Below, piece by piece: positions 1 through 45,788 of a stretch of 64,000 bases of DNA; position 1 is the first letter of the stretch; every line of letters starts with the position of its first letter. The stretch lies in the IMG/VR virus record IMGVR_UViG_3300031951_000001, positions 248,001-312,000 of that record; one strand, given 5' to 3'. The notes beneath the pieces were generated by a model that saw only the letters and a program-made list of their open reading frames with translations, was not told the origin of the DNA and did no database searches. Position numbers and translations under genes: made by a program.

Positions 1-42
1 GATGGTGATAGTTACTACTATAATATAAAACAAACGGACTAG
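1..42 (+). CDS. 3' end of an upstream gene, truncated by the window edge
   Basis: Frame 1 reads DGDSYYYNIKQTD then TAG at 40-42, just before the next gene's promoter motif. Confidence 0.4.
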   Translation, partial: DGDSYYYNIKQTD

Positions 43-50
43 TATTTATA
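43..50 (+). promoter_or_regulatory. Putative late promoter motif TATTTAT
   Basis: TATTTATA 4 nt before the gp25-like ATG; the motif recurs before most structural operons. Confidence 0.5.
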
Positions 51-54
51 TTAA

Positions 55-513: not shown

Positions 514-519
514 TAGTAC

Positions 520-2358: not shown

Positions 2359-2408
2359 TAATTTATTTTATTAGTATCTCCTCTATCTTTTGAAAATAGA
2401 CAATAAAC

Positions 2409-2416
2409 TATTTATT
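2409..2416 (+). promoter_or_regulatory. Putative late promoter motif TATTTAT
   Basis: TATTTATT upstream of 2433. Confidence 0.5.
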
Positions 2417-2432
2417 AAAAAATAGAGTAGTA

Positions 2433-7973: not shown

Positions 7974-7975
7974 AG

Positions 7976-11662: not shown

Positions 11663-11679
11663 TAAAAACCAACTTTTCA

Positions 11680-11687
11680 TATTTATG
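11680..11687 (+). promoter_or_regulatory. Putative late promoter motif TATTTAT
   Basis: TATTTATG upstream of 11713. Confidence 0.5.
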
Positions 11688-11712
11688 TATAAGGGTTAAA
11701 AAATAAAATAAT

Positions 11713-18600: not shown

Positions 18601-19114
18601 TTATTTTGTAACAAGAGTTAATTTGGGGTCTGCAACAGGAATTGCAGAATTAACAATACAGGGAAGTACTAATTCTAGACACCAAATAATTTGGAATGGA
18701 AACATAGTTGCTGACTCATTATTCTTGACTGGTGTAAATGATAATGCGGGTTTGAATATTAGTATTAATGAAATTATACAATACACCCAATTAAATAAAT
18801 ATAATTATACTCCTGGTACCGGTAATGCTACTCAAGTATTCCCTAATTCAGATTGGACCTCAAATGGAACAATAAATGTTAGCTATACTGCTAATGATGT
18901 TGCTCCATTAACTCCGCAAAGATTGTTTGGTTCGGTTGGAAATCAAATAGGGGTTGTGGAGAATTACCCGACTCCGGCTTCTTTAGCAAGTGATACTGAT
19001 ATAAAACTTCAGTTTACAAAAACTTTACCAAACCCAACTTACGTTGAAATTGTTACTATTTGTGCGGCTTTTGCGGGGGGTAATTACGAATTTAATATGA
19101 GATGTATAACCTAA
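15626..19114 (+). CDS. SprB-repeat surface/structural protein with a C-terminal propeller-like module
   Basis: Several GGTxPYTYxW...GLSxGxYSVTVxDAxGC units (e.g. GTEPYTYQWNTGSIEPSITGLSNGNYSVTVVDATGC); the module near 17800-18530 resembles those of the 3782-aa protein. Confidence 0.7.
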   Translation: MAICSLTYRLSVTGDCTNQGLGAFNLQVQGRAPFFYQFFSPFDDPLPIPFGDGVSELTISNLTPNTYSLQITDSCVPPTRQIVNVIISDGVCVSLLDHANTTCDAPNGSITARTDNNLQLTQYFLYENTRGYVTSGVSSLDDFVFRDLSGGTYYVVVNDGGGCTGRSESCIIKPSTPFDYGFYIVNDSPCTTNTGKVFVTGLTGTEPYTYQWNTGSIEPSITGLSNGNYSVTVVDATGCRKSKNVTVGMVRAIGVAELITIPPSCSGNDGQITIVVTGGTTPYYYLGSNGQSLITFSETFSLTGIPSGNYSITITDAALCSTSISQTLVTPNGFTIGNIGVVNSTCNNSSGALSPITLIGGNPPFTYTLTYPSGNSIQQTVNGNSNQFQGLSAGTYTLTISNGPCTFTNTYTINNIEKYTVTTSSTGTTCNGSNGSISARVSSGFTLPLSYQLTGQPTISNTSQTVVTFNNLFSGSYQLTVTDALLCSQVQNVTVTAADSIDFSMAGTNLNFGNDGTIQVYITEGPAPYNIQWSDNVNGQTGLNLTNLSAGTYSVLITDANGCQLSHQLTLVGYNNRGGYETYNYCQTEFVSNGLTVLKRPQNMFLEGFYDLTSGETNCILNEAIFTAVISVDGTVVEQPFYTSNSLGDYPSDQLWFNTIDSILTSFDSIGNVTIDPAQNSITLQSSCTDSGLSLNSAEVSVDFKISYDISCVCKVIPIPGPVFNTCDMIYTDASSQIYNYVLSSDTSTLLSVDGYNFDTPSIAYTNTKLWAYTTSAGSTSIREWDITLNPFTALYNRTITLGFAIGNAIGVKSGNILITTNADVTPNRYIEINVSGISPVVTNKVNLENFEEVVGSIVNGNDGNFYVLIQNNLNEPFVDYYLKIVSTFDYSTTFTLELTPTIVGVPSGLFFNPDLVNNSIIYLVDDAANIYQVTLSQPNSVLSYGSIGGAVITPSLYQGNSCFTPEFVLPTLPCGQNSTLGFINLNNTTGGYFVTRVNLGSATGIAELTIQGSTNSRHQIIWNGNIVADSLFLTGVNDNAGLNISINEIIQYTQLNKYNYTPGTGNATQVFPNSDWTSNGTINVSYTANDVAPLTPQRLFGSVGNQIGVVENYPTPASLASDTDIKLQFTKTLPNPTYVEIVTICAAFAGGNYEFNMRCIT

Positions 19115-19144: not shown

Positions 19145-21619
19145 ATGGCTGCTAATTTTTATAATTTTGAATTTTGTTGTAGTAATTTAGGAACAACCAT
19201 ATCGGCAAATGATATTGGTCAACCAAGTTTTGCGTCAAATCAGGTCTATTTTTTAGAATCATTAATTTTGTCAGGATGTGTGAGGGCCATAAGTGTTTCC
19301 TCATCCCCAGCAGGTGAAATCATATTAGATGATGCGAATTATACTCTAACCAGTTATAATAGTTGTTCATTGTGTACAGGGTCAACTGGTGGATGTTTCC
19401 CACCTGTGCCAACCCCAACTCCTACAATCTATTATAGTTCAGATACTAGATGTGGTAATGGAATACTAAAAAGAAATGAATGTGACCCTATAGTTATATT
19501 CCCAATGGGAGTTCAATGTGTTGGTGCAAATCCAACTTTGACGACAATACCTGATGGGTCTTTGTCACTAATAATCACAGGTGGAACACCACCTTATACT
19601 GTTACGTGGAGTACTGGAGGTAATGGATTACTTCTAACTAATTTAGGTGTTGGGAGCTATAGCTCAATTGTTGTGGATTATTATGGTGATTTCACGGCTT
19701 ATACTACTTGTACTTTAACCGCTCCAACTCCAGTGCCTACAGAAACTAGATTAACCAACACACCAACAGTTACACAAACAGTTACGCCGACCCCGGACCC
19801 TAGTTATCCTTCATTCTGCTTAACATTGACTAATATTAGGCCACCACAAACAATTAACATGTATTTTACATATACTGGGGAATTGTTAAACAGTATGCCT
19901 CAGTATTTAAGTAATAATAACTATAATATATATTGGTCCACAGACCAAGTCCCTAATAGTTGGGTATTAGACGGCACACTAACCCAAGGTAATGTTATAA
20001 ACTATACAACAGATATCACACCGTTATCAGGGTGGGTATTTTTGGACCCGCAAAATCAAGGGTCTGTTACAGGTATTTTAGGTGAATGTGCATCTTACGG
20101 AAATTTGTGTTTTACTTATAGACAAATCAAAGGTCCTGGTGACCCATTATATGAAGGTGTAATTGATTTATTTTATACAGGACAGATTAATGGGTATCCT
20201 TCATGGCAATCTTCTGATGGTACGTATATTCTTACTTGGCAAACTACTAATGGAGGTAGATGGGTAATTGATTTTACAACAAATCCTAAGTATACTAATC
20301 CGACTAATTCAAATCCATCGATACCGCCATTAACAGGATGGCAACAACCTGGTACAACACCACCTAGTTTTGCAACAATATATGAAGGTAATTGTACTCC
20401 AAGTACTACAGTCGGAACAGCATCCCTCAATGGAAGTAATAACAACACAAGCGGTGGGGGAAGTGTAATCGGAGGAGGACTTGGAGGTAATACTAGCGGT
20501 TTAGTTTCTGGAAATAATTTAGGAGGGGCTTTAACAACTAATAATCCATCCACGGGAGATATACCATTTAATGATACGGAGGGTAGAGACGGAACTACAA
20601 CCCTTGGTGGATATCAATGCGAGTGTATTGCGGTTAGAACAATAAGTACTTACCCCGGAATCGCATTTTACACAGATTGTGATGGTAATCCCGCACAGAT
20701 ATCTGTACCTGGAGGTATAGGAGTAAATGCGAGAGCTTGTATATGTAGAAGAGTTGGGACAACAGTAACGGGAGGGGTTATTGAAGAGCCATGTCAAACC
20801 GCTCAAAGCGCGGGGGGACAAACTTCAATAACAAATTATTGTTTAGATATTTTGGGAGATTCTTGTAATCAAAATGTTACAGGTGGAGGAACTCGTAGTG
20901 CGGTTACTACCGCAGAAGATACCGGAATAATAAATGACGGTAACATAACTTTTAGGGCTTCAGGAGGATATCCACCCTACCAGTATTCAATAGACGGAGG
21001 ATTAACATATAAATCTTCACCACTGTTCAGTAAATTAGGACCTGGCAGTTATAATACAATTATAAAAGATTCTTCAGGTAATACGTACAGTAATCAGGTT
21101 ACTTTGTTCGGACCTGTAGGACCTACTATTTACCAAGTATCGCTTGAAACAAGCAACGTAATACCTAGAAGTGCTTCTAATGTAACTACAAGACAATTTA
21201 CATCGACTATTAAGGTAACTCCTGATTTACCCGATGGAGTTGTTCTAACTTTTGATTTAATACATACGGATACCTTTAGAAGGTCTCCATCATTAACTGC
21301 AGCTACTTTAGTTACGAGTAGTTTACTGAAAAAGAATTCATTTAATTACACAGCATCTACGGTGGTATCAGATACAGGTACGACTCTAAATACAAATTCA
21401 GGTTGCCAACAGAAAGTAATTTATGTAAATAATTTAACAGAAACTTGGACATCTGTAAAATACTCAAAGACGGACACACTGTCTCTAATTACATCAACTA
21501 GTGTAACAAGAAATTCAATAGACAAGTGTTACATAGGAGAATCTATTGATGATTTTACATTAACAAATTTAACAATAAGTGGATGTAGTAATTGCGGTGT
21601 TTCAAACATTACAGTATAA
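19145..21619 (+). CDS. Modular Cys-rich surface/structural protein with SprB-like units
   Basis: N-terminal CC module, SprB-like units (ITGGTPPYTVTWST; SGGYPPYQYSIDGG), a T/P linker and a Gly-rich stretch. Confidence 0.6.
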   Translation: MAANFYNFEFCCSNLGTTISANDIGQPSFASNQVYFLESLILSGCVRAISVSSSPAGEIILDDANYTLTSYNSCSLCTGSTGGCFPPVPTPTPTIYYSSDTRCGNGILKRNECDPIVIFPMGVQCVGANPTLTTIPDGSLSLIITGGTPPYTVTWSTGGNGLLLTNLGVGSYSSIVVDYYGDFTAYTTCTLTAPTPVPTETRLTNTPTVTQTVTPTPDPSYPSFCLTLTNIRPPQTINMYFTYTGELLNSMPQYLSNNNYNIYWSTDQVPNSWVLDGTLTQGNVINYTTDITPLSGWVFLDPQNQGSVTGILGECASYGNLCFTYRQIKGPGDPLYEGVIDLFYTGQINGYPSWQSSDGTYILTWQTTNGGRWVIDFTTNPKYTNPTNSNPSIPPLTGWQQPGTTPPSFATIYEGNCTPSTTVGTASLNGSNNNTSGGGSVIGGGLGGNTSGLVSGNNLGGALTTNNPSTGDIPFNDTEGRDGTTTLGGYQCECIAVRTISTYPGIAFYTDCDGNPAQISVPGGIGVNARACICRRVGTTVTGGVIEEPCQTAQSAGGQTSITNYCLDILGDSCNQNVTGGGTRSAVTTAEDTGIINDGNITFRASGGYPPYQYSIDGGLTYKSSPLFSKLGPGSYNTIIKDSSGNTYSNQVTLFGPVGPTIYQVSLETSNVIPRSASNVTTRQFTSTIKVTPDLPDGVVLTFDLIHTDTFRRSPSLTAATLVTSSLLKKNSFNYTASTVVSDTGTTLNTNSGCQQKVIYVNNLTETWTSVKYSKTDTLSLITSTSVTRNSIDKCYIGESIDDFTLTNLTISGCSNCGVSNITV

Positions 21620-29980: not shown

Positions 29981-32900
29981 ATGGATACTATAAGTTTATT
30001 TAACATATCGGGTGTTAATCCTCCATTCATAATATACATATGTGATATTTACGGCGATAATTGTGTCGAAGTTGCTATAGTAAATAACTTTGTTCCCCCG
30101 ATTATTACACTTAATGTCCCTATAGTTTTCCAAGACTCGGCGGCGGTTGGTGTTAAAATAATAACCGCGGACGGATGTGAAAGATTAGAAACTGTTTTAT
30201 GTAGTATTATAACCACCCCAACCCCTACAATATCGATAACACCAACGATTACCCCTACAATCACCCCAACTATTACTGAAACACCTACAATCACCCCAAC
30301 TATTAGTATTACCCCAACTATTACCCCGACGGTTACTGAAACACTCACACAAACTCCAACCAATACACAAACTCCAACAATAACTAATACGGAGACACCA
30401 ACTAATACGGTAACACCAACCTTAACCCCAACACCTACGAATAATGGTTGTTTTTGTTACTTTGTTGATATTACCCAGTTAGATATCAATAGAGCTAGCG
30501 GTAATACTGAAACAACTGCAAATGGTGTTGTTAATTTAGTGTATTATGATTGTTCCGAGGGTATTATAACCTCTGCAATTACTGGAAGTGGAATTTATTA
30601 TATCTGTAACAATCCATCGGAAACTATAGATGGGTTTAGTATTCCGGTACTATTGAATTACAGTCAAAATAATTTTAGTTATAGTAATGTATTCACACCA
30701 TTATCATTCTCTAGTACGTTTTTTACAGATTATTCAACTTGTTCACAAAGCGGGGATTGTGTTTTGCCAAGTAGCACCCCAACACCAACTCCAACCCCTA
30801 CAGTAACTAATAATGGTTGTTTTTGTTATTTTGTTAATATTTCGGCAATTGATTTAGCAAATGCTATAAACAATACCAATCCCTCATTTGATGGTGTTGT
30901 AAATATTCTATACATAGATTGTAAAGGGGTACTACAAAGACTTACTATATCTTCTCCTGGTATAACTGTTATATGTAACAATGTTCAATCTTCTATTAAC
31001 TCATTCGGAATAGATGTTTATATAACATATTCTAATAACGATGAGTCTTATAATAATAGAAATGATATAATCCAAAGTTTTTATACCACTGATAATACCA
31101 ATTGTACTGAGGCTTCTTCATGTGTTCCACCAACCCCTACTTCTACTAAAACACCAACCGCCACCCCAACAGGTACTGCGACGATAACCCCTACAAATAC
31201 ATTAACTCAAACACAAACACCCACTACAACATCAACATCAACGCAAACACCGACCGCAACACCAAGTCCATTCCCATCAAGAACTCCAAGTAATAGCCCA
31301 ACACCCACAGTAACACCAACTGTAACACCATCACTAACTGTTTCAGGTTTCCCAACAGAAACGCCAACCTCGACCCAAACACCTACCGTTACTCCAACAG
31401 TGACCCAAACACCCACTAATACTTTAACATCAACACCAACAGTTACTGAAACCCCGACCAATACTGTCACACAGACTCTGAGTCCAACTAGTACCGTAAC
31501 ATCAACATCAACTCAAACACAAACTCAAACTCCTACAGAAACAGTTACTAATACCCCTACAGTGACTCAAACACAAACTCAAACTGTTACAATCACAGAA
31601 AGCCCAACGAATACCCCCACAATAACTGAAAGCCCAACAAATACCCCAACAATCACATCAACTCCTACTGAAACATCTACTCCGACATCTACCAATACTA
31701 ATACTCCGACCAGTACGAGTACATTAACAGTGACCCCAACAACAACTCAAACTGTCGCATCTACTAATACACCAACACAGACACCTACCGCAACTGTTAC
31801 TGAAACTCAAACACCAACGCCAACTAATACTAACACATCAACACCTACTAATACTAACACATCAACACCTACTAATACTGTAACCGTAACTGAAACTAAA
31901 ACACCAACGCCAACCAAAACACCAATTAATTGTAATTGTATTGAGTTTTTCGCCGCTGCGGGTGGAGCTGTTATATCTTATAATAAATGTGATGGAACTT
32001 CAGTTACTAATTTATTCGTACCTGGAGGGTCTACGGTTAAGGATTGTATTATAAATGAAGAATATACAATAACATCTGGTGTAATAGTAACTAATTTTGG
32101 TTCATGTATCGACAATTCATGTCCTACTCCGACACCAACACCTACCACCACCGAGACCCCAACAAATACGGTAACACCAACTCCGACCACTACTGAAACT
32201 CCGACTAGTACAGAGACCCCAACAAATACCGTTACCCCAACTCCGACTATAACAGTCACTCCAACTAAAACTGAATTTAAACCTCTAAACTTATGGTTTA
32301 GTGGTTGTTGTCAACCAGGACAAATCATTCAATTATATGAAGTTCCTGGTGAAATAGGTCAAACCATAATTGAAGGAGATGTTTATTATATTGAATCACC
32401 ACAGTTCAAGGGATGCGCGACTAATATAGCTCAAACTCTAACGGATTTACAATACTTGTATTTGAATATTACTAATCAATTCACTTGCCAAGATTGTATA
32501 GATTCAAATCCTTGTCCAACATCTACACCTACTCCGACACCAACCGAAACTCCAACTCAAACACCAACTCAAACACCAACTACAACTCAAACGCCAACCG
32601 AAACAAATACCCCAACAGTAACTCAAACACAAACAAGTACAATCACTAGTACTCCAACAAACACGGTTACTAATACTCAAACTCAAACAGTTACACAGAC
32701 AGTGACTGTTACTGAAACGATAACAAGTACTCCTACTCAAACAAATACAACAACTAATACTCCAACTCAAACCAGTACAGTTACCAACACATCGACCCCA
32801 ACATCAACAGAGACATCTACGCCTACGCCAACCAACACTACAACATCTACACCTACAACAACAGAAACACCCACACCTACCCCAACACCAACGACAACAC

Positions 32901-34426
32901 AAACACCAACCATAACCTCAACTTCAACACAAACACCAACAGTCACACCAACTAATACTATTACCGTTACGCCTTCAACAATATTCTGTGTTGACTGTGT
33001 TGAATCAGGTTACACATATGTATTCAGTTGTGCTCCAACACCTTCTATCACTAAAACGCCAAGTGTTACCCCAACGATAACCTACACACCGACAGTCACC
33101 CCAACCAATACAAGTACCCCAACAAAAACACCTACCCCAACTCAAACTAATACTGTAACTGTAACAATAACTAAAACTTCGACACCTACAAACACAACAA
33201 CTGTTACTAACACTACAACACAGACACCAACACCAACTGAAACACCGACCGCAACGGTGACTAGTACACAAACACCAACTGTAACAGTTACTAGTACTTC
33301 TACACAAACACCAACGAATACTCAAACACCTACTACTACACAAACACCAACCCCATCAATTACTGAATATAAGCCATCATTCAGACACTTTAGTGCATGT
33401 TGTTCTCCACATATAGTATTCAGAGTTTATGAGATACCTGGATTGACAGCCACAACCATTGTTGAAGGTAATATTTACTATATTGAGACAGGTGTGTTCA
33501 GTGGTTGTGCAACAAGTATTGCCGAAGTATTTACACCAAATAATTATTTGTTTGTTGGTGTGACGGCCCAAACTGATTGTGATGAATGTACGTTCTCAAA
33601 TCCATGTCCGACACCAACCCCTACGCAAACCCCTACACAAACAGAAACTCCAACACAAACCCCAACACCGACACAAACTCAAACATCTAGCCCTACTAAC
33701 ACCCCAACTTTAACACCTACCCCAACTAAAACTCCGGCGCCAACTTGTGATTTGATTGTTACTTTGGTGAATACCGAATCAATTAGTTCAAATACTGAAA
33801 TTAATATTTGGTATGATGATTCAGGCTCTATGGGGTCTACACGAGCTCCTTTGGAGCAAATGATTGCACCTGGTGGAATACTTGAAACTTGTTTGATAGG
33901 TGTTTATAACAATGATATTACGTTATATAATGAGAGAGTTCAATTCTTCACAATGCAAACTGGCCCATTAGGTAATGTAAATGAAAGATTTGTTGCGTGT
34001 TTAGCAACTTCGAGAAATGCTGGAAGAGCAGTTGATACTAGCGTTGATTTAGTAATCAATTTGGTTTTCCAAGACGAGAGTGGTGGAGCGTATGTTACAG
34101 GTGGAACTTTTACGCCTACAACTGTATTAGACCCGGATTATGGGACTGACGTTACAACTTTGAGAAACCTCTTATCTTCAATTGATTATGGATTAAGAGG
34201 TGTTGTATTTGCGGTAATAAATGAGGGACAACCTACCTTCCAAGACTTGGTACAAACAACTTTTGTAAATGCGGGAATATATTCACCACCTAACAACTTA
34301 AGTGATTATTACTTGACCAATTTAAACTACCAATTAGGTATAAACGATGGAGATACTTCGACTTATTATTATAATTTGATAATCTCCACACTTAATTCTT
34401 TGGGTATCGTAACACCGGGATGTTGA
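29981..34426 (+). CDS. Mucin-like Thr/Pro-rich modular protein with a C-terminal vWA-like domain (1481 aa)
   Basis: Long TPT linkers, repeated Cys modules, and [11 protein letters not shown] (DxSxS MIDAS) at 33815-33829. Confidence 0.75.
32975..33094 (+). repeat. 120-nt dispersed repeat, copy 1 (copy 2 at 34758-34877)
   Basis: 39/40 aa identical; 18 nt differences. Confidence 0.9.
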
Positions 34427-34439
34427 TATATATAAAGGG

Positions 34440-37400
34440 ATGCCAACAGCACTAATACAATCGGTAAATTATGCGGGACAATATGGGGATATAACATTCA
34501 ATCCCCAAACCGGCGGCACCGTATCTGTAGGTGTGCAACTTTTACCATTTAATTATGTTGCCGATTATGTATATGGGGTTTACGTAGTTTGTTTTTCAGC
34601 CTTTAGTGTTTGCTGTGAATTCAATTTACTTGCACCTACACCGACCCCTACCGCAACAATAACTAAAACGCCTACCATAACTCCAACTGAAACTGTAACT
34701 CCCACAAAAACACCAACTCCGACAATAACCCCCACAATGACCATGACTCCAACCCCATCAACAATATTCTGTGTTGATTGTGTTGAGTCAGGTTATACGT
34801 ATGTCTTCAGTTGTGCCCCAACTCCATCTATAACAAGAACGCCAAGTGTTACACCAACAATTACTTATACACCTACTCAAACATCAACTAAAACTCCTAC
34901 TCAAACACCAACGACGACTCAAACACCAACAATTACCAAGACATCAACTCAAACACCAACAATTACCAAGACATCAACCCCAACTAGAACGCTTACTCCA
35001 ACAGGAACTAATCCTCCATCTGTTCCCGAATGTGCGGTAATATTTAATTCATTACAAAATGTATTTTTCTATGATGTTGACACGGACACTACTACACAAC
35101 TTATAGTTCCTGACACAGTTGGTTCCGCGACAAATGATATTGCCCATACTTCAAGTAAGTTGTGGATGGCTAGTGCCAGTGAGATATACGAATGGGATAT
35201 TACTTTGAGTCCGTTTACCGCGGTATTTAATCGTGTAATTACATTACCATCAGGCATAGGTCCTGGGTTGGGGGCAATTAATAACACAACCTTGATTGCG
35301 GTCCAAAGCGGGGGTAATCCAAAACAGGTTGTTTCGGTAAATATTACTACAAATACTGCGGTATTTACAACTCTATTCCCGATGTTGATAAACAGAGGTG
35401 TTGCGGGAGATATTATTTTAACAACAACAAATAAGGTTATTATTACGACTAACGCGACCGCGGCACCATTCGGACAATTCATAACACAATATAATTTCTT
35501 AAATGGTGACCCTGAAGTCGATATTCAATTGAATCCAACCATCACCCAGCCTTGGGGCATTTTTCAAGATAATGGTGAAATTTATATCATGGATGGTAAC
35601 GAAACTAATAATGTATTCCATATTGATAAAAATTATCCGTACACAATTACATTAACAGGTGATACAGGATATTCGGTGTATGGGGCTTCTCAATTACCAA
35701 ATTGTTTAGATGTAAACTTCATACCTCAAATAACACCAACACCAACCCAAACACCAACCCAAACTCCTACAACGACCCAAACACCAACAGTAACTGTAAC
35801 TGAAACAATTACTAATACCCCAACTAATACCCCAACCCCAACTAAGACACCCGTGTCCTGTGACTGTTTTGAAATAACCGCGGTTGGGAATAATGCGGTT
35901 ATTGACTATTTTAAATGTGGTAGTGAAGGGGTTTCGGTAAGAAAATTAATAGAACCTGCAAGACCATTTAAAGTTTGTTTAGAAAATAGTGGAGTTACTA
36001 CTCTTTCAGGGGTAACTCAAATTAGTAATTTTGGTCCTTGTATTGACGGAGAATGTGCTAGCCCAACCCCAACTCCTACAGTCACCCAAACACCAACAAA
36101 TACATTAACACCTACAATTACCCCAACAAATACATTAACACCTACAATTACCCCAACTGAAACCCAAACTCCCACAATTACCTCAACTAGTACTCAAACC
36201 CCAACTAGTACTCAAACTATAACTCCTACACTTACCCAAAGTCCAACACCAACAGTAACTCTTACTAATACCGTGACACCAACAATTACTGAAACACCAA
36301 CAAGTACGGCAACACAAACACCAACAACTACCACAACCCAAACCCCAACAAGTACAGAAACACCAACCACAACCCAAACTCCAACAAGTACACAAACACC
36401 TACCACAACCCAAACTCCAACCACAACCCAAACTCCAACAAATACAATGACTGTAACTCCGACTCCGGTTTGTATAGACGGATGTTCAGTTTTATATGTC
36501 GATAGTGAATCATTAATTTATTCTTATGACTATAATACAGAAACGTCTACAGTAATTTTTGACCCCAAGGCAACAGTAAGAGATATTGCTAACACTAGCT
36601 CAAGGTTATTCATTACTATCGTAAATAGAATTCAAAGATACAGTTTTTCAACTTGCCCTGTGAGTGTTACATTAATTGATGAAATAACTAGACTTTTCTT
36701 GGGTGATGGTTTATTTGCAATAAATGATACCACATTAATTATAACTAGTACACAAGCAATTGGTCAAGAAAACGTACAAGAATTAAACTATATAACAAAT
36801 ACAGTAACCCCTAAATTCTCACTACCAACCGGTTATTCGGTAAGAGGTGATTTTATTCTAACAACCGGCGGAAAATTCATAGTTTCAATGTTCCAAGGAT
36901 TGAGTAACTATATTTTACAATATGACTATTCAACTGGTGAACAAGAAGTTTTATTCCAAGTTTCTCAAATTATTGCCGGATTCTTTGAATTTGGTGGAAA
37001 TATCTATGCTGTGGATACTTCAGGTATTGTTTATCAAGCAATTTTAGATTCTCCATGGGGGTTAGTTTCTACAACTTTAGACCCATTAACTTTTACAGGG
37101 GTTATTAAAGGTACATCCCAAGAGTTATCGTGTTTACCTACAAATTTTAACATAGTAACCCCAACCCCAACTCCTACCCAAACCCCAACTCCTACTGTCA
37201 CCGTTACCGAAACACCTACTATGACGGTAACTGAAACTCCGACTCAAACGGAAACTCCGACTCAAACCCCAACCAATACTGAAACACCTACACAAACTTC
37301 TACCCCAACACCAACACCTACTTTAGATTGTTTTTGTTACACATTTGTAAACACCAGTTTATTAGACAAACAAAATGTAAGTGGTAAAGATTGTAATAAT

Positions 37401-40400
37401 ATAAATTTTGAGTACTCATTACAAATTTCAGGTTCTGAAGGTGACACCGTAAGTTTATGTGCGTCATCAAGTTTAGTTTTAGACCCATTTATTGCGGTAT
37501 TCAATAACGGAGTTTGCGAAGGATTTTGTGGCACCTCAACACCAACACCAACACCGACAGAGACTCCCACACCAACCATTACTGACACTCCTACACAAAC
37601 CCCAACAATTACCGAAACAAACACACAAACCCCAACTCAAACTCCAACAAACACTGTTACAGAAACATCCACATCAACACCGACCCCAACTCAAACTGAA
37701 ACACCGACAAATACTGTAACCTCTACTCCAACAAATACAGTAACCTCTACCCCAACGATAACATCTACATCAACTCAAACTCCAACGGTTACATCAACTC
37801 CAACTCCATCAATTACCGAGTACAAGCCAGCTATAAGAACATTTAGTGGATGTTGTTTCCCATTTGAAATTTTTAAACTTTATGAAATACCTGGATTAAC
37901 CGCTAACACAATAACTGAAGGTACAGTTTACTACATTGAATCCGGTGTATTTAGCGGTTGTGCTACAAACATTGCCGAAACATTCACACAAAATAATTAT
38001 CTATTTGTTAATATTAGTGCCCAAACTAGTTGTAGCGGTTGTTCGGCATCCTACCCATGCCCGAGCTCAACCCCGACACCTACTGTAACATCAACACCAA
38101 CAGTTACTCCAACGATTACCTCGACTCCAACGATTACCTCGACCCCAACTCAAACTGAAACCCCAACTCAAACTGAAACCCCAACTCAGACACAAACTTC
38201 AACAGTAACATCAACACCTACAGAAAGCCCAACTTCGACACAAACTCAAACTCAGACACAAACTCAAACTGTAACACCAACAAAAACGTCAACCCCAACA
38301 AGAACACCTATTGAGTGTGTTTGTTATTCTATAACCAATATAGGTGAATTTTTTGGTAGTTATAACGGAATTTTATGTAATGGTGGACCTTCAGGAGGAA
38401 TACCAATAGGTCCTGGTGTAACATTTACCGCATGTTATGCTAAAGGGTCACTTCAAACTGTGGGAGGTACTTTAACATTTCTTGAGAATGGGTCTTGTGA
38501 GAACTCAATACTTTGTCCTACTAGAACTCCGACTCCTACAAGAACTGGTACCCCGACCCCGACTCCTACAACTACTGAAACACCTACAAATACCGTAACG
38601 CCAACTACGACAACTACTGAAACACCGACTAGTACATCAACACAAACACCAAGTGTAACCAACACTATAACATCAACACCTACTCAAACATTGTGTTGTA
38701 CCTCATGGACACTATATGGAGGTTTAGGTCAATTACTCGATAATGGATTTGTTATTAAACCTCCTTTGAGGGTAGGGGATGATTTTGCATTGATACCTAC
38801 AAATGTAGGCTCACCTGGTACTTTAGTTGGTCAAGTTTTGGAACTAATCAGTGTTAGCCCTCCACTATCGCCCCAATATTTTACAATTTTAACTGCTACG
38901 TTTAACCCTATAAATTCGGCCTACTTATTAACATTTACCCCTACTTTAACAATTAATTTGGGTAGTACCTTCCAGAGTATAATTTATAACATTTATCAGT
39001 CAGGAGGTACACAATTCAATGTTTACAATTGTGGAGGGTCTCTTACGACTTTGAATTTGAATAACAATGAAATATTGGTCATTCCTTGTTCCTATGATGT
39101 TCAGGTTATATCAGGATTCGGGTATGCTGAGTCTGACCCATCATGTGTATGTGTCACTCAAACTCCAACACCAACATTGACACCTACTGTGACATCAACA
39201 ATAACTCAAACCCCAACAAATACAGTAACCGTTACTCAATATACTTGTAATTGTTATTTTATAAATGTGCCAGACATTAGAGATGGAGTAAATTTAGTAT
39301 TTTTAGATTGTTTGGGTAGTTTGATTTCAATAGCACCAAATAATTTTGGAAATTATTGTGTTAGAGAAATAATTGATTATGGTTCAGGTACCGCCGAACT
39401 TGTAGGACTATGTATAGATGGAAATTGTCCAACACCAACGCCAACTCCAACTCAAACCGAAACCCCAACCCCAACTGAAACTCCAACCCAAACAATTACC
39501 CAAACTCCAACTGTTACTCAGACCTCGACACCAACTGTTACTCAGACCTCGACACCAACTGTTACTATCACGGAATCGGCTACACAAACTCAAACACCAA
39601 CACCGACTGAAACTCCAACTAATACTTTAACACCGACTGTGACAATTACTGAATCTGTTACGCCAACAAGGACATTAACACCAACCAAAACTCAGGCACC
39701 ATGTTTATCTAGCTGTGATGTGTTGTTATTAGACAATGTCGGTAGAGTTTATATATACAATTCAGTCACTAACTCTCCACTGTACTTAGGTATTGATGGT
39801 CCTGATGGTTCCTTCGATATTGCACATACAAATAACAAAATATGGTTAAATAGAGGAACTTCATTATATGAATATGATATAATATTATGTCCGTTCTCGG
39901 CGACATTCAGCAGAGAAATTTCAGGTTCAACGGCATTTAGTGCTGGATTATTTGCAATAAATGACACTACTTTAATTGCTAATAATGGAGCGACCCCTTC
40001 TTCAATTTTAGAGATTGATGTTTCGACTAATCCTTACACAGTTACAACAAAATTCTCTTTATTACCAGGAAGAAGAGTTTCAGGTGATTATGTTCTAACA
40101 AATTCAGGTAAGTTAATTGTTAGTAATTTTTCGGGAACAAACCCAAATGCACCCACTGGTGTTTACATAACACAATATAACTATATAACTTCGGCAACAC
40201 CCCCTGTAGATAACAATGTTGATATATTAATATCCCCAACAATTGTATTCCCATATGGGTTATATCAATATGGAGGTGGTTTCTATATTCTGAGTGCGAA
40301 TGGTACACAATATACTTTAGACCTAAATCCTCCGTACACACTTACCGCGGCACCTACAGTTCCTTTACCTCCAAATACAATCAACGCCGCATATTTTGGT

Positions 40401-43400
40401 GCATCCCAATCCAACGGATGTTTCGACAATAACATAGTACCTGTGTCACCAACACCAACCTCAACTCCAACCCCGACCCCTACCCCAACTGCAACAATAA
40501 CACAAACCCCAACTATAACACAGACTTCAACACCTACACCAACAATAACTTCTACAGTAACACAGACTCCAACCCAAACTCAAACACCAACTTCAACAAT
40601 TACTGTTACACCAACTCAAACAAGTACGGTTACATCAACCCCAACTGTTACATCAACCCCGACACCAACCATAACTGAATACAAGCCGGCAATTAGAACG
40701 TTTAGTGGATGTTGTTTCCCATTTGAAACCTTTAAGATTTTCGAAATACCTGGATTAACCGCAAATTCAATAACTGAAGGCACGGTTTATTACATTGAGT
40801 CCGTAGGATTTAGTGGATGTGCGACAAACATTGCAGAGACATTCACTCAAAACAATTACCTATTTGTTAACTTGAGTGCTCAAACAAGTTGTAGTGGTTG
40901 CTCGACAAATTACCCATGTCCAAGCTCAACACCAACACCTACAGTTACATCGACTCCTACATTAACGCCAACGCAAACCCAAACACCAACGCAAACCCAA
41001 ACACCAACTGAGACATCCACTCAAACACCAACTGAGACATCCACTCAAACACCAACCCAAACTCAAACTTCAACACAAACACCGACTAATACACAAACAT
41101 CAACCAACACCCCTACCACAACAGTAACACCAACTTTGACACGTACTCCTGATACTTGTAATTGCTACACATTCTTTAACATATCAACTTCACAAAGTTT
41201 GACTGTAGATTTTATTGATTGTACAGGCTTACAAAACCAAATTACAATAAATTACGGAAATAGTGCTCAAGTTTGTGTTAAAAATAATATTTTCTCGGGT
41301 ACCCCATCAGGGGCTTTAGTATCATTCTTAAATGGTGATTGTACAAATGGATGTCCGACAACTACCATACAAGCTTGTAACCCATTTGTAGTGAATGGAA
41401 CAAATAGAATTATTTATACTTATGACCCAATAACTAACACACAAATTCCATTACCTATTAATACCGAATCTGTTTCTATATACGATATTGCAACAAATGA
41501 TAACTATTTATGGATATATGGTAATTTCGCAACATTAGGAAATGGTATAAAAGAATATTTTATAACAACATCCCCATTTACATCAAGTTTAAATAGATTT
41601 ATATCGGGTTCTACACTATATCAATCCACAAGAAATGGTTTAGCGGTTTTAAATAACACCACATTAATAACGGCTTCAGGTACGGCTGGTAATGTGATAG
41701 TGAGTTTAAATATTTCATCAAATACTTGGGTTGCAACTCCGTTATTTACTTTACCAACAAATAGAGTCCTAAGGGGTGATTTAACTTATACAAACACAGG
41801 TAATATTATTGCGTTAACTTATAATAATGTTGCGGGTACCGGGTCTTTTTTAACACAGTTTGATTTATTTGGTAATCAGGAATTAGAATTCCAAATAGGT
41901 AATTCTGTTGAAGGATTTGGTTTGTTCATGTATAATTCACAAATATTTACGGTTGCCTCTTCATCGGCGTCTCCCGCTGTAGTTAGAAGAGATTTGAACT
42001 TCCCCTATACATCTTTAACAGTAAACAATATGACAATAACAAATGTTGGGTTTGCCCAACCGTTAAGTTGTTTAAATGTTAATTTCATAGGAGTTACCCG
42101 AACACCAACACAAACCCCAACACCTACCCCAACACCTACTACCACTAAAACTAATACGCCTACATCAACGCAAACCCAAACCCAAACTCCAACTAGAACC
42201 TCAACCCCAACAAACACCCAAACTCCTACTATTACAAGTACCTCCACAATTACTCCTACCGTTACAAGAACCGCCACAATTACTCCTACCGTTACAAGAA
42301 CATCAACGATTACTCCTACCGTTACAAGAACATCAACAATTACTCCAACAATAACACAAACGGCAACCCAAACGAATACCCCAACAGTAACACAAACGGC
42401 AACTGTTACACAAACTGCAACTCAAACTCCTACACCTACCGAAACTTCTAATCTGTTTGCTTGTACTTGTTATAATTTCTTCAACACATCAAATAACCAA
42501 CCCGGAACAGTTACTTATTATAATTGTGATGGGGTATTTAGTTCTGTAACGGTTAGTGCCACTTCATATGTTCAATTATGTGTTTCAGGTAATTCAACAA
42601 ATCCATTATACACCGCAACGACCCAAATTACTGCTATAGATGAGTTAGGTGATTGTACAGTAAGTTGCCCAACAATTAATTTGGATAGTTGTATTTCCTT
42701 TTTAGCTGGGGGGCCGGGTAACATCATTCAATCATATGATTTTCAAACTAATACCACAACTTTTTTACCCATACCAAATAGACCATGGTCAATGCTTGGA
42801 ATTGCAAATACTTCAAATAAACTTTGGGTTCACGGTACTTATCTTGGTTTCACCAGTGGAGGTATAAGAGAATGGGATATAACATTTTCACCGTTTAGTG
42901 CAACATATAATGGCAGAACTATAAACATACAAAGTAATACTATATTACCTAATAGTAATGCATGTGGTTTAGTTGCAATCGATAATTTTAATTTATTAAG
43001 TGTGTCAGGTGCTACTGCAGGGTCCCAAAGTGTGGTTAATGTTGATATTTCAGATACCATAACCAATAACGCGGTATTTACGAAACTTTTTGATTTACCA
43101 AGTAATAGAAGAATATTAACTGATTTAGTTTTTACTCAAACTGGTAAGATTATAATAATGACCCAAACAACTACCCCTGTCAAAATATTTATTACTCAAT
43201 ATGATATACTTGGAAACATTGAGGTTGATGTTCCATTATTCACATCAGGAATAGATGCAAATAGTGGATGGTCTATTTTGATTAATTCTAATAATTTGTA
43301 TATTGTAAGAGCTACTACTCCTGGAGAAATTTATCAGGTAAACTTAACTTCACCATATTCGGCAACCTTACTTTCTGAAAGTTTACCAGTTACTGTGACG

Positions 43401-45788
43401 GACCAATCCCAATCACCAGAGTGTATCACAGTTGAGTTTATACCTGTTACAAAAACACCGACTCCAACACCTACTAAAACTCCAACACCTACCGTGACTA
43501 TGACGATAACGCCAACTTCAGGTGCAACAGAAACACGGACTCCGACGCCGACTACCACTCAAACTTCAACACCAACAATAACATCTACGATTACTCCGAC
43601 AATAACGGCAACACCAACAAGAACGGCGACTCAAACACCAACAATAACAAGAACGGCGACTCAAACACCAACAATAACAAGAACGGCGACTCAAACACCG
43701 ACAATAACAAGAACGGCGACTCAAACACCGACAAGAACTGCGACACCAACAAGAACACCAACTAGAACGGCAACAAATACTCCATCGATTACCCCAACCA
43801 TAAGTATAACTCCAACAATAACCTCAAATTTACCATGTAAATGTTTTAATTTTTACAATACAAGTGATACGGTAAATGGTACTCTTATATACACTGCTTG
43901 TAATTTAACAGTTAGTTCTACAACGGTATCGGCTAATTCATTTGTACAATTGTGTGTAAATTTAAGCGGATATAGTGGGTCATCACAAATAACATTTGTT
44001 AACCAAGTTGGTTCATGTGTAAATGGTTTTTGTCCTAACATATCTATAAATTCTTGTGATTTGTTATCGGTTAAAAAAGAACCTTCTGGTCCGACTAATG
44101 GTCTTTGGCAGATTATGAGTATTAGAAACGAAAGTCTTTTGTATTTGCCGGTTTCTGGTAGAACTGTAGGAACCAACGCTTTAGCGAGAACGTCTAATAA
44201 AGTTTGGGTACTAGGATTTTTTACGGCATTAGGTGGTTCTAGAATAAGGGAATACTCAATTACCCAAAATCCTTGGTCTGCGGTGGTGACTAATAACTAT
44301 ACATTACCGACAAATTTGCCGTCTGTTATCGACAATGGTATGGCGGCAATCGATGATGAGAATTTTATTGTTGGGTCCGGAACTGCATTGAATGTTATTG
44401 CAAAATTAAATGTTTCAGGTGGAATTTTATCATCTACTAAAATTATAGATTTAATATCACCATTTACGGTTTTTGGTGACATGATTTATACTACAACCAA
44501 TAAAGTCATAGTTGCGGTTAAAAATACAATTAATACTAACATATGGCAAATTCACCAATATGATGTTAATGGGACTTTTGAACTGGCGGTAGACGTTTCA
44601 TCTATATCTTTATTTAATTCCGGAATAAATTTCGCGGTAGTTAATAACCAATTATATTTATTACCACATAATCAAACATATAATAATTATTATTTAATTA
44701 ATTTAAATAATCCTTACAATACCACAATTCAGTCGGCTCTTGGAGGTAGTGCCCCAAATGACGTTGCTCAAAATCCTGAATGTATTAATATTCAGTTTAT
44801 CCCTTCTACACAGACACCAACACCAACAAGAACAAAAACTCCGACACCAACAAGAACTCCAACAAGAAGTGCAACACCAACAAGAACTCCAACAAGAAGT
44901 GCAACACCAACAAGAACTCCAACAAGAAGTGCAACACCAACAAGAACTCCAACAAGAAGTGCAACACCAACAAGAACACCAACAATAACCATGAGTCCGT
45001 CGATTACACCAAGTCGAACAGTAACAATGACACCTTCATCTATTGGTATCTATACTCAACCATTGATGGTAAGTTTTTCTGGAACATCTACTGTAATATC
45101 AAGATACGATGTAACAACAAATACTATTACAACTTTAGATGTACAAAGTTCCGGTATTTTACCAAATCAAGATATTGCATGTACTCAAAATAAATTTTGG
45201 TTATCAAATCAGGGGTCTGGTAACATAATAAAAGAATATACTTATACCGCGTCACCTTTCAATTATGTGTTGAATAGAACTTTGAATATACCAGTTACAT
45301 TGACTGATGGATTAACTGTAAGGACTGTGGGAGGTATTGAATATTTGATTGGATGTACAGGTAATACAACTATTGTTGAAATGGATATATCATCAACAAC
45401 GGCCATAGTTACCGATAAATTTGATTTACCTCTTAACAGAACCATAGGTGCTGATATGATGTATACTAATACTGGAAAATTAATAGTTGCCAACTATTCA
45501 GGTGGTAATACAACAGTCGGATTTATGACGCAGTATAACTATGAAACAAATACTTTAGAGATTGATAGGGCATTACCAACTACTTATGCTGCTGGCGGTC
45601 AAAAAGTTTATTTTGTATCTAATAATAATATCTATAGTACTAGTATCTCTGCTAGTCTTTCGGTTGTTTATCAATGGAATACAGATAGTAATATTAACAA
45701 TCCACTTCCATTACAATCCTTCGAGTTACCACTACTTCGTGGAAGCGCTCAACCACAAGAATTCATAAACATTAATTTCACCTCATAA
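34440..45788 (+). CDS. Giant mucin-like modular surface/fibre protein (3782 aa)
   Basis: Uninterrupted ORF; seven ~235-aa repeated modules, multiple 6-Cys and CC modules, T/P linkers. Confidence 0.8.
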   Translation: MPTALIQSVNYAGQYGDITFNPQTGGTVSVGVQLLPFNYVADYVYGVYVVCFSAFSVCCEFNLLAPTPTPTATITKTPTITPTETVTPTKTPTPTITPTMTMTPTPSTIFCVDCVESGYTYVFSCAPTPSITRTPSVTPTITYTPTQTSTKTPTQTPTTTQTPTITKTSTQTPTITKTSTPTRTLTPTGTNPPSVPECAVIFNSLQNVFFYDVDTDTTTQLIVPDTVGSATNDIAHTSSKLWMASASEIYEWDITLSPFTAVFNRVITLPSGIGPGLGAINNTTLIAVQSGGNPKQVVSVNITTNTAVFTTLFPMLINRGVAGDIILTTTNKVIITTNATAAPFGQFITQYNFLNGDPEVDIQLNPTITQPWGIFQDNGEIYIMDGNETNNVFHIDKNYPYTITLTGDTGYSVYGASQLPNCLDVNFIPQITPTPTQTPTQTPTTTQTPTVTVTETITNTPTNTPTPTKTPVSCDCFEITAVGNNAVIDYFKCGSEGVSVRKLIEPARPFKVCLENSGVTTLSGVTQISNFGPCIDGECASPTPTPTVTQTPTNTLTPTITPTNTLTPTITPTETQTPTITSTSTQTPTSTQTITPTLTQSPTPTVTLTNTVTPTITETPTSTATQTPTTTTTQTPTSTETPTTTQTPTSTQTPTTTQTPTTTQTPTNTMTVTPTPVCIDGCSVLYVDSESLIYSYDYNTETSTVIFDPKATVRDIANTSSRLFITIVNRIQRYSFSTCPVSVTLIDEITRLFLGDGLFAINDTTLIITSTQAIGQENVQELNYITNTVTPKFSLPTGYSVRGDFILTTGGKFIVSMFQGLSNYILQYDYSTGEQEVLFQVSQIIAGFFEFGGNIYAVDTSGIVYQAILDSPWGLVSTTLDPLTFTGVIKGTSQELSCLPTNFNIVTPTPTPTQTPTPTVTVTETPTMTVTETPTQTETPTQTPTNTETPTQTSTPTPTPTLDCFCYTFVNTSLLDKQNVSGKDCNNINFEYSLQISGSEGDTVSLCASSSLVLDPFIAVFNNGVCEGFCGTSTPTPTPTETPTPTITDTPTQTPTITETNTQTPTQTPTNTVTETSTSTPTPTQTETPTNTVTSTPTNTVTSTPTITSTSTQTPTVTSTPTPSITEYKPAIRTFSGCCFPFEIFKLYEIPGLTANTITEGTVYYIESGVFSGCATNIAETFTQNNYLFVNISAQTSCSGCSASYPCPSSTPTPTVTSTPTVTPTITSTPTITSTPTQTETPTQTETPTQTQTSTVTSTPTESPTSTQTQTQTQTQTVTPTKTSTPTRTPIECVCYSITNIGEFFGSYNGILCNGGPSGGIPIGPGVTFTACYAKGSLQTVGGTLTFLENGSCENSILCPTRTPTPTRTGTPTPTPTTTETPTNTVTPTTTTTETPTSTSTQTPSVTNTITSTPTQTLCCTSWTLYGGLGQLLDNGFVIKPPLRVGDDFALIPTNVGSPGTLVGQVLELISVSPPLSPQYFTILTATFNPINSAYLLTFTPTLTINLGSTFQSIIYNIYQSGGTQFNVYNCGGSLTTLNLNNNEILVIPCSYDVQVISGFGYAESDPSCVCVTQTPTPTLTPTVTSTITQTPTNTVTVTQYTCNCYFINVPDIRDGVNLVFLDCLGSLISIAPNNFGNYCVREIIDYGSGTAELVGLCIDGNCPTPTPTPTQTETPTPTETPTQTITQTPTVTQTSTPTVTQTSTPTVTITESATQTQTPTPTETPTNTLTPTVTITESVTPTRTLTPTKTQAPCLSSCDVLLLDNVGRVYIYNSVTNSPLYLGIDGPDGSFDIAHTNNKIWLNRGTSLYEYDIILCPFSATFSREISGSTAFSAGLFAINDTTLIANNGATPSSILEIDVSTNPYTVTTKFSLLPGRRVSGDYVLTNSGKLIVSNFSGTNPNAPTGVYITQYNYITSATPPVDNNVDILISPTIVFPYGLYQYGGGFYILSANGTQYTLDLNPPYTLTAAPTVPLPPNTINAAYFGASQSNGCFDNNIVPVSPTPTSTPTPTPTPTATITQTPTITQTSTPTPTITSTVTQTPTQTQTPTSTITVTPTQTSTVTSTPTVTSTPTPTITEYKPAIRTFSGCCFPFETFKIFEIPGLTANSITEGTVYYIESVGFSGCATNIAETFTQNNYLFVNLSAQTSCSGCSTNYPCPSSTPTPTVTSTPTLTPTQTQTPTQTQTPTETSTQTPTETSTQTPTQTQTSTQTPTNTQTSTNTPTTTVTPTLTRTPDTCNCYTFFNISTSQSLTVDFIDCTGLQNQITINYGNSAQVCVKNNIFSGTPSGALVSFLNGDCTNGCPTTTIQACNPFVVNGTNRIIYTYDPITNTQIPLPINTESVSIYDIATNDNYLWIYGNFATLGNGIKEYFITTSPFTSSLNRFISGSTLYQSTRNGLAVLNNTTLITASGTAGNVIVSLNISSNTWVATPLFTLPTNRVLRGDLTYTNTGNIIALTYNNVAGTGSFLTQFDLFGNQELEFQIGNSVEGFGLFMYNSQIFTVASSSASPAVVRRDLNFPYTSLTVNNMTITNVGFAQPLSCLNVNFIGVTRTPTQTPTPTPTPTTTKTNTPTSTQTQTQTPTRTSTPTNTQTPTITSTSTITPTVTRTATITPTVTRTSTITPTVTRTSTITPTITQTATQTNTPTVTQTATVTQTATQTPTPTETSNLFACTCYNFFNTSNNQPGTVTYYNCDGVFSSVTVSATSYVQLCVSGNSTNPLYTATTQITAIDELGDCTVSCPTINLDSCISFLAGGPGNIIQSYDFQTNTTTFLPIPNRPWSMLGIANTSNKLWVHGTYLGFTSGGIREWDITFSPFSATYNGRTINIQSNTILPNSNACGLVAIDNFNLLSVSGATAGSQSVVNVDISDTITNNAVFTKLFDLPSNRRILTDLVFTQTGKIIIMTQTTTPVKIFITQYDILGNIEVDVPLFTSGIDANSGWSILINSNNLYIVRATTPGEIYQVNLTSPYSATLLSESLPVTVTDQSQSPECITVEFIPVTKTPTPTPTKTPTPTVTMTITPTSGATETRTPTPTTTQTSTPTITSTITPTITATPTRTATQTPTITRTATQTPTITRTATQTPTITRTATQTPTRTATPTRTPTRTATNTPSITPTISITPTITSNLPCKCFNFYNTSDTVNGTLIYTACNLTVSSTTVSANSFVQLCVNLSGYSGSSQITFVNQVGSCVNGFCPNISINSCDLLSVKKEPSGPTNGLWQIMSIRNESLLYLPVSGRTVGTNALARTSNKVWVLGFFTALGGSRIREYSITQNPWSAVVTNNYTLPTNLPSVIDNGMAAIDDENFIVGSGTALNVIAKLNVSGGILSSTKIIDLISPFTVFGDMIYTTTNKVIVAVKNTINTNIWQIHQYDVNGTFELAVDVSSISLFNSGINFAVVNNQLYLLPHNQTYNNYYLINLNNPYNTTIQSALGGSAPNDVAQNPECINIQFIPSTQTPTPTRTKTPTPTRTPTRSATPTRTPTRSATPTRTPTRSATPTRTPTRSATPTRTPTITMSPSITPSRTVTMTPSSIGIYTQPLMVSFSGTSTVISRYDVTTNTITTLDVQSSGILPNQDIACTQNKFWLSNQGSGNIIKEYTYTASPFNYVLNRTLNIPVTLTDGLTVRTVGGIEYLIGCTGNTTIVEMDISSTTAIVTDKFDLPLNRTIGADMMYTNTGKLIVANYSGGNTTVGFMTQYNYETNTLEIDRALPTTYAAGGQKVYFVSNNNIYSTSISASLSVVYQWNTDSNINNPLPLQSFELPLLRGSAQPQEFININFTS
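34758..34877 (+). repeat. 120-nt dispersed repeat, copy 2
   Basis: [26 protein letters not shown](K/R)[13 protein letters not shown]. Confidence 0.9.
37810..38070 (+). repeat. ~260-nt dispersed repeat (CC module), paired with ~40670-40930
   Basis: Both encode EYKPAIRTFSGCCFPFE...CPSSTP, with mostly third-position differences. Confidence 0.85.
42241..42346 (+). repeat. 30-nt tandem repeat x~3.5 (coding)
   Basis: Core ATTACTCCTACCGTTACAAGAA is identical in three units. Confidence 0.85.
43621..43733 (+). repeat. 30-nt tandem repeat x~3.8 (coding)
   Basis: GAACGGCGACTCAAACACC(A/G)ACAATAACAA. Confidence 0.9.
44851..44977 (+). repeat. Exact 30-nt tandem repeat x4 (coding)
   Basis: CAAGAACTCCAACAAGAAGTGCAACACCAA x4 plus a partial copy; encodes a 10-aa TRTPTRSATP unit. 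Confidence 0.95.

Follow-up and report, generated by a model that had tools for sequence, protein, structure and literature searches.

Seven diverged five-bladed beta-propeller modules in one giant protein of a freshwater jumbo phage

The 64,000-nucleotide stretch of DNA analyzed here (the window) covers bases 248001-312000 of the 322,372-bp IMG/VR virus record IMGVR_UViG_3300031951_000001, which is complete according to CheckV. One open reading frame (ORF) of the window, at 34440-45788, encodes a giant protein that carries seven diverged copies of a single module of about 235 aa together with Pro/Thr-rich linkers and small Cys-containing domains. The module was predicted with high confidence to fold as a five-bladed beta-propeller, and that it represents a large, unnamed phage domain family is well supported. 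We consider that the giant protein is probably a long, flexible fiber of the virion surface with several different binding heads; the location on the virion, the binding and the ligands are inferred.

An initial annotation of the window had listed seven copies of the module in the giant protein (M1 to M7) and an eighth (M8) in another gene. All eight segments were found within about 20-30 nt of the places given there. The eight copies were aligned end to end by MAFFT with 20-39% pairwise identity, and the motifs that had been noted initially were present in the consensus as DIAxTSNKLW, IxEYDITxSPFSAxxNRxIT, GLxAINxTTLI, KFxLPxNRxVxGDxxxTNTGKxIV, ITQYDY..EVD, and SQxxxC. A profile hidden Markov model (HMM) built from the eight copies matched each copy with an independent E value of 6e-78 to 3e-94 and detected nothing beyond these eight when the window was translated in all six frames. 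The count of seven plus one therefore applies to the window but not to the genome, which encodes at least 13 copies in four proteins.

The fold was examined using two AlphaFold2 (AF2) models, the first of M1 with the eight-row alignment and the second of M4 together with the small domain that precedes it (c5). The M1 model had a predicted local distance difference test score (pLDDT) of 91.7 and a predicted template modeling score (pTM) of 0.89; it contained 20 strands and lacked helices of four or more residues. The second model (pLDDT, 91.7; pTM, 0.90) showed an all-beta, six-stranded small domain followed by the same 20-strand pattern, again with no helix of four or more residues. In M1, blades I to IV were formed from consecutive sequence (residues 39-74, 79-120, 125-169, and 177-214), and blade V was closed by the C-terminal strand 221-223 joining the three N-terminal strands at residues 6-27. 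The propeller fold suspected from the spacing of beta-rich blocks was thus borne out with five four-stranded blades, where five or six had been suggested, and the M1 and M4 models share a common fold.

In an exhaustive structural comparison with VIA-align, five-bladed propellers ranked first: the C-terminal domain of YjiK (PDB 3qqz; Z score, 15.6), SCAN apyrase (2h2n; 14.8), a bacterial glutaminyl cyclase (3mbr; 14.5), the platform of Gp45 of the Staphylococcus aureus phage phi11 (5efv, residues 144-400; 14.2), and olfactomedin (about 12.9). Six-bladed Kelch and YWTD propellers were at the top of a Foldseek search against the PDB with a template modeling (TM) score of about 0.58, but these gappy matches were set aside in favor of the five-bladed VIA-align matches, which had lower root-mean-square deviations (rmsd). 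A pair of Cys residues marks the ends of the module, one four residues from the start and the other in the terminal QxxxC. In an alignment of 24 sequences, both were present in 12 and both absent in 8, the remaining rows being ambiguous (one) or truncated at one end (three). Because the two columns are kept or lost together, this covariation suggests that the pair is probably a disulfide clasp across the propeller closure, except in M7, which lacks both.

Searches against Pfam, PHROGs, and PDB sequences, lenient thresholds included, gave no family match to the module or to the whole protein, and Pfam assigned no family to the whole protein at E values up to 0.01. At E values up to 10, Pfam returned only chance-level matches to one copy each (Kelch_6, E 0.15), and no match exceeded the gathering score of the Kelch, NHL, YWTD/Ldl_recept_b, WD40, SGL, DUF4394, DUF6923, or SdiA-regulated families; for DUF4394 and DUF6923, none of the eight copies gave a match at these lenient E values. 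A PHROG match to the giant protein, phrog_15511, fell on linker sequence and was discarded as uninformative. A tblastn search of M1 against 50,697 deposited phage records yielded nothing at an E value of 1e-3. A word-based search yielded four giant proteins besides 27 short ones labeled "hypothetical," and the full profile search over 1.84 billion representatives found 1,211 clusters (defined at 50% identity) at E values up to 1e-3, of which 277 were at E values up to 1e-30.

Among 173 members of the family that were fetched, 138 carried one module, 25 carried two, 6 carried three, and 4 carried four. The seven-copy array is therefore the largest seen. Pro/Thr linkers were present in 98 of these proteins, and the module formed the C-terminal end in 73. 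Its partner domains (SprB repeats, Fib_succ_major, a DUF5122 propeller and, in the same genome as the window, a reprolysin-like metalloprotease) are typical of surface and adhesin proteins. Two unannotated proteins of Virus NIOZ-UU157, A0A7S9SU35 and A0A7S9STY0, were the best viral matches among predicted structures (TM, 0.83 with 25% identity, and 0.74) and are probably true family members.

All contexts of relatives that were examined were phage structural-gene neighborhoods. On a 101-kb T4-like contig (JGI 3300043335), two tandem single-module genes directly follow the Gp23 capsid gene. In a siphovirus, a solo module of 239 aa is encoded between tape-measure/distal-tail genes and a GH16-like gene, and the gene for a relative of 3,186 aa comes immediately behind the crAss tail genes Ring_2 and Ring_1. 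Another T4-like contig encodes a giant protein with four modules. In addition, a related phage encodes an orthologue (P0054) of P0002, the protein that carries M8, with the same SprB-plus-module design. The gene order and sizes of the P0054 block match window positions 2433-19114, and P0002 is thus a conserved member of a baseplate-adjacent block. The two proteins of the tandem pair (10001-11766 of the JGI contig) have 291 and 287 aa, each with an N-terminal segment of about 55 residues, and lack the clasp Cys residues.

According to standard propeller topology, the loops of each antiparallel four-stranded blade are divided between the two faces, with A-B and C-D on the same side and B-C and D-A on the opposite side. 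With the faces assigned by the strand order of the model, the mean column entropy among the eight window copies was 2.08 bits for the D-A and B-C loops, 1.54 bits for the A-B and C-D loops, and 1.69 bits for the strands, with 25, 8, and 20 insert columns, respectively. The difference in entropy between the two loop classes had a Mann-Whitney p value of 9e-6. Two close pairs, namely, M1 with its nearest relative P0047 (66% identity) and M3 with P0124 (86%), showed the same tendency. Between M3 and P0124, 19.5% of the positions differed in the D-A and B-C loops versus 3.3% in the A-B and C-D loops, and the corresponding values for M1 and P0047 were 62.5% versus 32.4%. The divergence at surface-like positions that had been described initially thus holds in a more specific form, in which variation and indels are concentrated in the D-A and B-C loops, and conservation of the A-B and C-D loops equals or exceeds that of the strands.

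The history of the copies was examined in a FastTree phylogeny of 223 modules, each covering at least 190 profile positions. M4 to M7 and the copy of a 1,416-aa protein of the same genome fell in one loose neighborhood, in which M5 and M6 were sister to each other (support, 80); M1, M2, M3, and M8 were placed elsewhere. Path lengths between the copies were 1.5-3 substitutions per site. No repeats were found at the DNA level between the propeller copies; within the giant gene, the only repeats were those of the linkers and a single 300-nt pair (67% identical). The idea that all seven copies arose by a recent tandem expansion was rejected, as only M4 to M7 group loosely and M1, M3, and M4 are closer to other metagenomic proteins. 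Diversification by a diversity-generating retroelement was also rejected, given that the 322-kb genome contains no reverse transcriptase (no match to RVT_1) and the propeller DNA contains no repeat pair. Because of the scattered placement in the tree and the closer relatives in other metagenomic proteins, the array is, as judged from the sequences, old and partly assembled by shuffling rather than by a recent burst.

In the reading that we favor, the giant protein would form a very long and flexible fiber on the virion surface, anchored by its short N-terminal domain. About 1,100 residues of Pro/Thr linker would act as extended spacers and would give a contour of the order of 0.3-0.4 micrometers, along which seven propellers and seven small disulfide-rich beta domains would be strung. 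Because the core and the A-B and C-D loops are kept while the D-A and B-C loops differ in sequence and length, each propeller may bind a different ligand on its variable face, and these ligands would probably be host envelope glycans or other surface polymers. Such a fiber would provide a multivalent, multispecific, and reversible first contact with cells, and M8 in the baseplate-associated fiber protein P0002 would do the same job at the tail. The 85 Cys residues and the paired Cys pattern fit an extracellular protein, and the N terminus, with no hydrophobic stretch resembling a signal peptide, fits cytoplasmic assembly into virions. The copies had initially been interpreted as a panel of different binding specificities. 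The one-sided variability and the phage contexts are consistent with such a panel, whereas we infer the binding, the ligands, and the virion location, and the term "glycan" is an assumption.

Several points weigh against this reading. P0002 and the relatives are encoded among virion structural genes, but the giant gene lies outside the baseplate block, between a replication island and the SbcCD repair genes, so that its association with the virion rests on analogy. The relatives adjoin head genes as well as tail genes, so that the attachment could be at either site. The structural matches are evenly spread over many propeller families (Z, 12-15.6) and thus point to no specific kinship with phi11 Gp45. 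Loops usually vary more than cores, and the loop faces were taken from strand order and not from coordinates. Furthermore, the phage is known from metagenomes alone. A bolder version of the favored reading is a tentative possibility: one polypeptide may act as a multispecific "fishing line," with seven specificities on a flexible tether of sub-micrometer length that contacts several surface polymers, and the family may be a portable receptor-binding cassette of T4-like, sipho-, crAss-like, and jumbo phages. If this were true, the targets could be various strains or species of host, or non-host material around which hosts are concentrated.

The giant protein could instead decorate the head, like Hoc or the hair-like fibers of some jumbo phages, and mainly bind non-host material such as mucilage, particles, or the sheaths of algae and cyanobacteria, thereby keeping virions near hosts rather than recognizing a receptor. 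The two single-module genes that immediately follow the major capsid gene in a T4-like phage, the weak match of the N-terminal part of P0002 to a Hoc-like PHROG, and the position of the giant gene outside the baseplate block are in line with this role, and jumbo phages with "hairs" on head and tail have been proposed to gain help in attachment from them (PMC7824862). However, other relatives are found in tail-tip, crAss tail, and baseplate blocks, and gene position alone does not fix the attachment site. We consider the head role unlikely; it is a variant of the favored reading and not its opposite.

Many five-bladed propellers are enzymes, and the modules could be glycoside hydrolases, lyases, phosphatases, or cyclases, in which case the fiber would degrade capsule or slime as a multienzyme depolymerase. 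Two enzymes, SCAN apyrase and glutaminyl cyclase, are indeed among the best solved structural matches, a paralogous protein of the genome pairs the module with a reprolysin-like protease, and phage propeller depolymerases such as endosialidases are known (PMC4901313). Nevertheless, the only invariant columns among the eight window copies were A41, P64, T116, and Q224, none of them acidic or His, which argues against a common catalytic site. No column was invariant in the 24-sequence alignment, where the near-invariant positions (Y17, W48, E57, P64, G82, D130, T134, Q156, and Q224) belonged mostly to blade-repeat motifs. No enzyme family was matched by sequence at E values up to 10, and in the protease fusion a separate catalytic domain precedes the propeller, which stands where a targeting module would be. 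An enzymatic role is accordingly improbable.

Still less credence is given to the propellers as inert structural beads or spacers whose divergence reflects relaxed constraint after old duplications. The duplications are old, as indicated by the path lengths and the lack of DNA-level repeats described above, and the modules have no known ligand; however, all seven keep the complete fold signature and an open frame (E below 1e-77), and the family has been retained across more than 1,200 clusters, where it usually supplies the distal domain at the C terminus. In addition, the variation is concentrated in one loop class and the other is highly conserved, a distribution that uniform relaxation would not produce.

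The giant gene is real and not an artefact of assembly. A search of other assemblies with M1 found the same phage only, in three IMG/VR contigs from other metagenomes with M1 100% identical. The first contained the identical 11,349-nt ORF, the second matched positions 1-10474 at 100% as far as the contig end, and the third was collinear and 99% identical. Contigs assembled from four sequencing runs showed zero differences over the module-coding stretches, and the junction from M4 through the linker to M5 was bridged by contigs in three runs. A chimera caused by misassembly across the repetitive linker DNA is extremely improbable: short-read contigs of public runs end within several linkers (about 41027, 43490-43700, and 44875-44945), but the independent assemblies, the bridged M4-M5 junction, and a reading frame that stays open across 32 linkers contradict it. 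The third assembly (IMGVR_UViG_3300008114_000012) has a 79-nt deletion in the N-terminal domain (window 34522-34600) that shifts the frame and leaves a 3,663-aa ORF from an internal Met; this may be a real variant without the putative anchor or an assembly error. In run X3, a second contig of low depth differed from the window at 28 of 310 positions over 42389-42698 (c6), where the main contig equaled the window, indicating a co-occurring strain variant.

The giant protein consists of an N-terminal domain, linkers, the seven propellers, seven six-Cys domains, two domains of 75 aa, and one of 164 aa (Table 1). The Pro/Thr-rich linkers comprise 32 segments, and Thr and Pro together account for 31.6% of the protein. 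The N-terminal domain, a candidate virion anchor, resembles the N terminus of another linker-rich protein of the genome (165512-167785), and a language-model atlas search with the first 66 residues gave no usable match. The six-Cys domain (about 65 aa; CxC ... C ... C ... CxxC) occurs seven times here (HMM E values of 2e-17 to 6e-25 for c1 to c7) and also in at least four other proteins of the genome. c5, c6, and c7 abut M4, M5, and M6 on their N-terminal side, and this arrangement, together with the pTM of the two-domain model, suggests that a small domain and a propeller may form a fixed unit. The 75-aa domain also occurs twice in the upstream linker-rich gene, and an identical Cys-rich mini-motif of 15 residues with flanking linker is found at window 34770-34814 and at about residues 995-1010 of the upstream protein. 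Because the mini-motif is common to both genes and the 75-aa domain is present twice in each, a recent exchange between the neighboring genes is suggested.

Table 1. Features of the giant gene and related genes in the window
Feature	Window position	Strand	Basis or remark
Giant gene, 3,782 aa	34440-45788	+	stop-free 11,349-nt ORF
N-terminal domain, ~61 aa	34440-34622	+	no signal-peptide-like hydrophobic start
Propeller M1	35022-35729	+	HMM E 2.8e-94; AF2 pLDDT 91.7
Propeller M2	36465-37154	+	HMM E 6.3e-78
Propeller M3	39696-40448	+	HMM E 1.3e-85
Propeller M4, fused directly to c5	41352-42098	+	HMM E 5.7e-89
Propeller M5, fused to c6	42672-43445	+	HMM E 3.4e-88
Propeller M6, fused to c7	44037-44804	+	HMM E 6.7e-86
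Propeller M7	45036-45785	+	HMM E 2.4e-84; Cys columns
Small six-Cys beta domain c1	35847-36065	+	alignment and HMM
Small six-Cys domain c2	37317-37538	+	
Small six-Cys domain c3	38301-38525	+	
Small six-Cys domain c4	39231-39431	+	
Small six-Cys domain c5	41145-41351	+	
Small six-Cys domain c6	42441-42671	+	
Small six-Cys domain c7	43821-44036	+	
75-aa Cys-containing domain, two copies	37821-38051, 40689-40910	+	DNA repeat D3
164-aa domain	38655-39146	+	type not recognized
Second gene, P0002, 1,162 aa	15626-19114	+	SprB/Ig-like repeats, M8, ~190-aa C-terminal region
Propeller M8, in P0002	17768-18550	+	HMM E 2.5e-78
Upstream linker-rich mosaic protein, 1,481 aa	29981-34426	+	no propeller; small domain types in common with giant gene

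The other module proteins of the genome are encoded outside the window. An ORF of 3,709 aa (genome positions 189376-200502) carries four to five further diverged copies. It also contains six-Cys domains and a C-terminal region of about 310 aa resembling a different beta-repeat domain, and its N-terminal 100 or so residues are similar to those of the next gene. The 1,416-aa ORF (genome positions 200570-204817; protein, 1,413 aa) combines Pro/Thr linkers and one C-terminal propeller module with a reprolysin-like M12B zinc metalloprotease domain (Pfam Reprolysin_5; E 1e-12; HExxH motif), and its product is possibly a virion-borne protease aimed by the propeller.

The 322-kb genome contains a T4-type Gp23 capsid gene and a large terminase gene. 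The capsid protein shares only about 40-45% identity with the closest deposited sequences, which belong to a Microcystis phage, Flavobacterium phages, and uncultured huge phages, and matching DNA was found in lake and freshwater metagenome runs from about 15 studies. The phage is a T4-type freshwater jumbo phage. The window starts with gp25-like and gp6/J-like baseplate wedge genes, which are followed by a series of large unannotated ORFs, the last of which encodes P0002. A short replication island (RuvC-like, exonuclease, and primase genes) comes next and precedes three linker-rich ORFs (757, 1,481, and 3,782 aa), and SbcCD and sigma factor genes follow them. A megablast search with the neighboring genes against deposited phage genomes gave no match. 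Over window positions 30000-44000, the linker-rich genes show a strongly negative GC skew (-0.25 to -0.36) and a positive AT skew; these result from thousands of ACN (Thr) and CCN (Pro) codons and are not a replication signal. SprB repeats (Pfam PF13573) are present in P0002 (15626-17767) and in the next ORF (19145-21619), and there is also a weak match to a Hoc-like immunoglobulin (Ig) family, phrog_3945. As SprB repeats are typical of the gliding adhesins of Bacteroidota, they may give a weak hint of a Bacteroidota host.

Most receptor-binding parts of uncultured phages lack annotation, so that hosts can be predicted, and host range read from sequence, only to a limited extent. The family delineated here has no name but a confidently predicted fold; its members, in about 1,200 clusters, come from the structural-gene regions of very different phage types, and the module profile could flag candidate adhesin genes in metagenomes. 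Seven heads per chain and at least 13 per genome are an unusual route to multivalency. If the heads differ in specificity, they offer a testable model for the way in which a large freshwater phage could reach more kinds of target. Expression and screening of the modules are practical, since each is small, consists of a single chain, and is well predicted.

The module and the giant protein were compared with known systems. By shape, the nearest ESM Atlas clusters are DUF4394 (PF14339) and DUF6923 (PF21959), with a TM of 0.76 over 215 aligned residues; these bacterial propeller domains are also nearest by language-model features (score, 0.90) and alike in size. No copy matches them by sequence, as stated above, and their function is likewise uncharacterized, so the likeness explains nothing yet. 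YjiK, SCAN apyrase, glutaminyl cyclase, and the olfactomedin domains are all five-bladed (Z, 12.6-15.6) but share only 8-12% identity and no sequence family with the module, and the phage copies do not have a conserved set of catalytic or metal-binding residues.

In the receptor-binding protein Gp45 of phi11, the five-bladed propeller is the proposed platform for binding of GlcNAc/teichoic acid, which gives a phage propeller of this kind with a sugar-binding role a precedent (PMC4901313). Such platforms are also described for the staphylococcal phages P68 and 80alpha. The fold of Gp45 is the same over 202 aligned residues (rmsd, 3.1), but only 11% of the residues are identical and sequence searches gave no match. 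The Gp45 homotrimer has a coiled-coil stem, a C-terminal tower, and one propeller per chain, whereas the giant protein has up to seven propellers per chain, Pro/Thr linkers, and probable Cys clasps, and no stem or tower was seen, as the two models lack helices of four or more residues and the flanks are linkers and small beta domains. Jumbo phages with flexible hair-like fibers on the head or tail have been described, the fibers being proposed attachment aids (PMC7824862). The Streptomyces umbrella toxin particles (UmbA) carry diverged beta-propeller lectins on one particle, which is read as hedging across unpredictable targets (PMC13274773). There, each lectin is a protein of its own on its own spoke of a toxin complex that Actinobacteria secrete, and the particles serve here as a working analogy only, with no claim of homology. 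Literature searches found no published phage fiber with this module or with the Pro/Thr linker design. With its Pro/Thr linkers, the giant protein follows the beads-on-a-string design of modular extracellular proteins such as cellulases and scaffoldins, and known phages mostly use several fiber genes or trimeric fibers. Altogether, phage adhesins are a known theme, of which seven propellers arrayed along Pro/Thr linkers represent an unusual variant.

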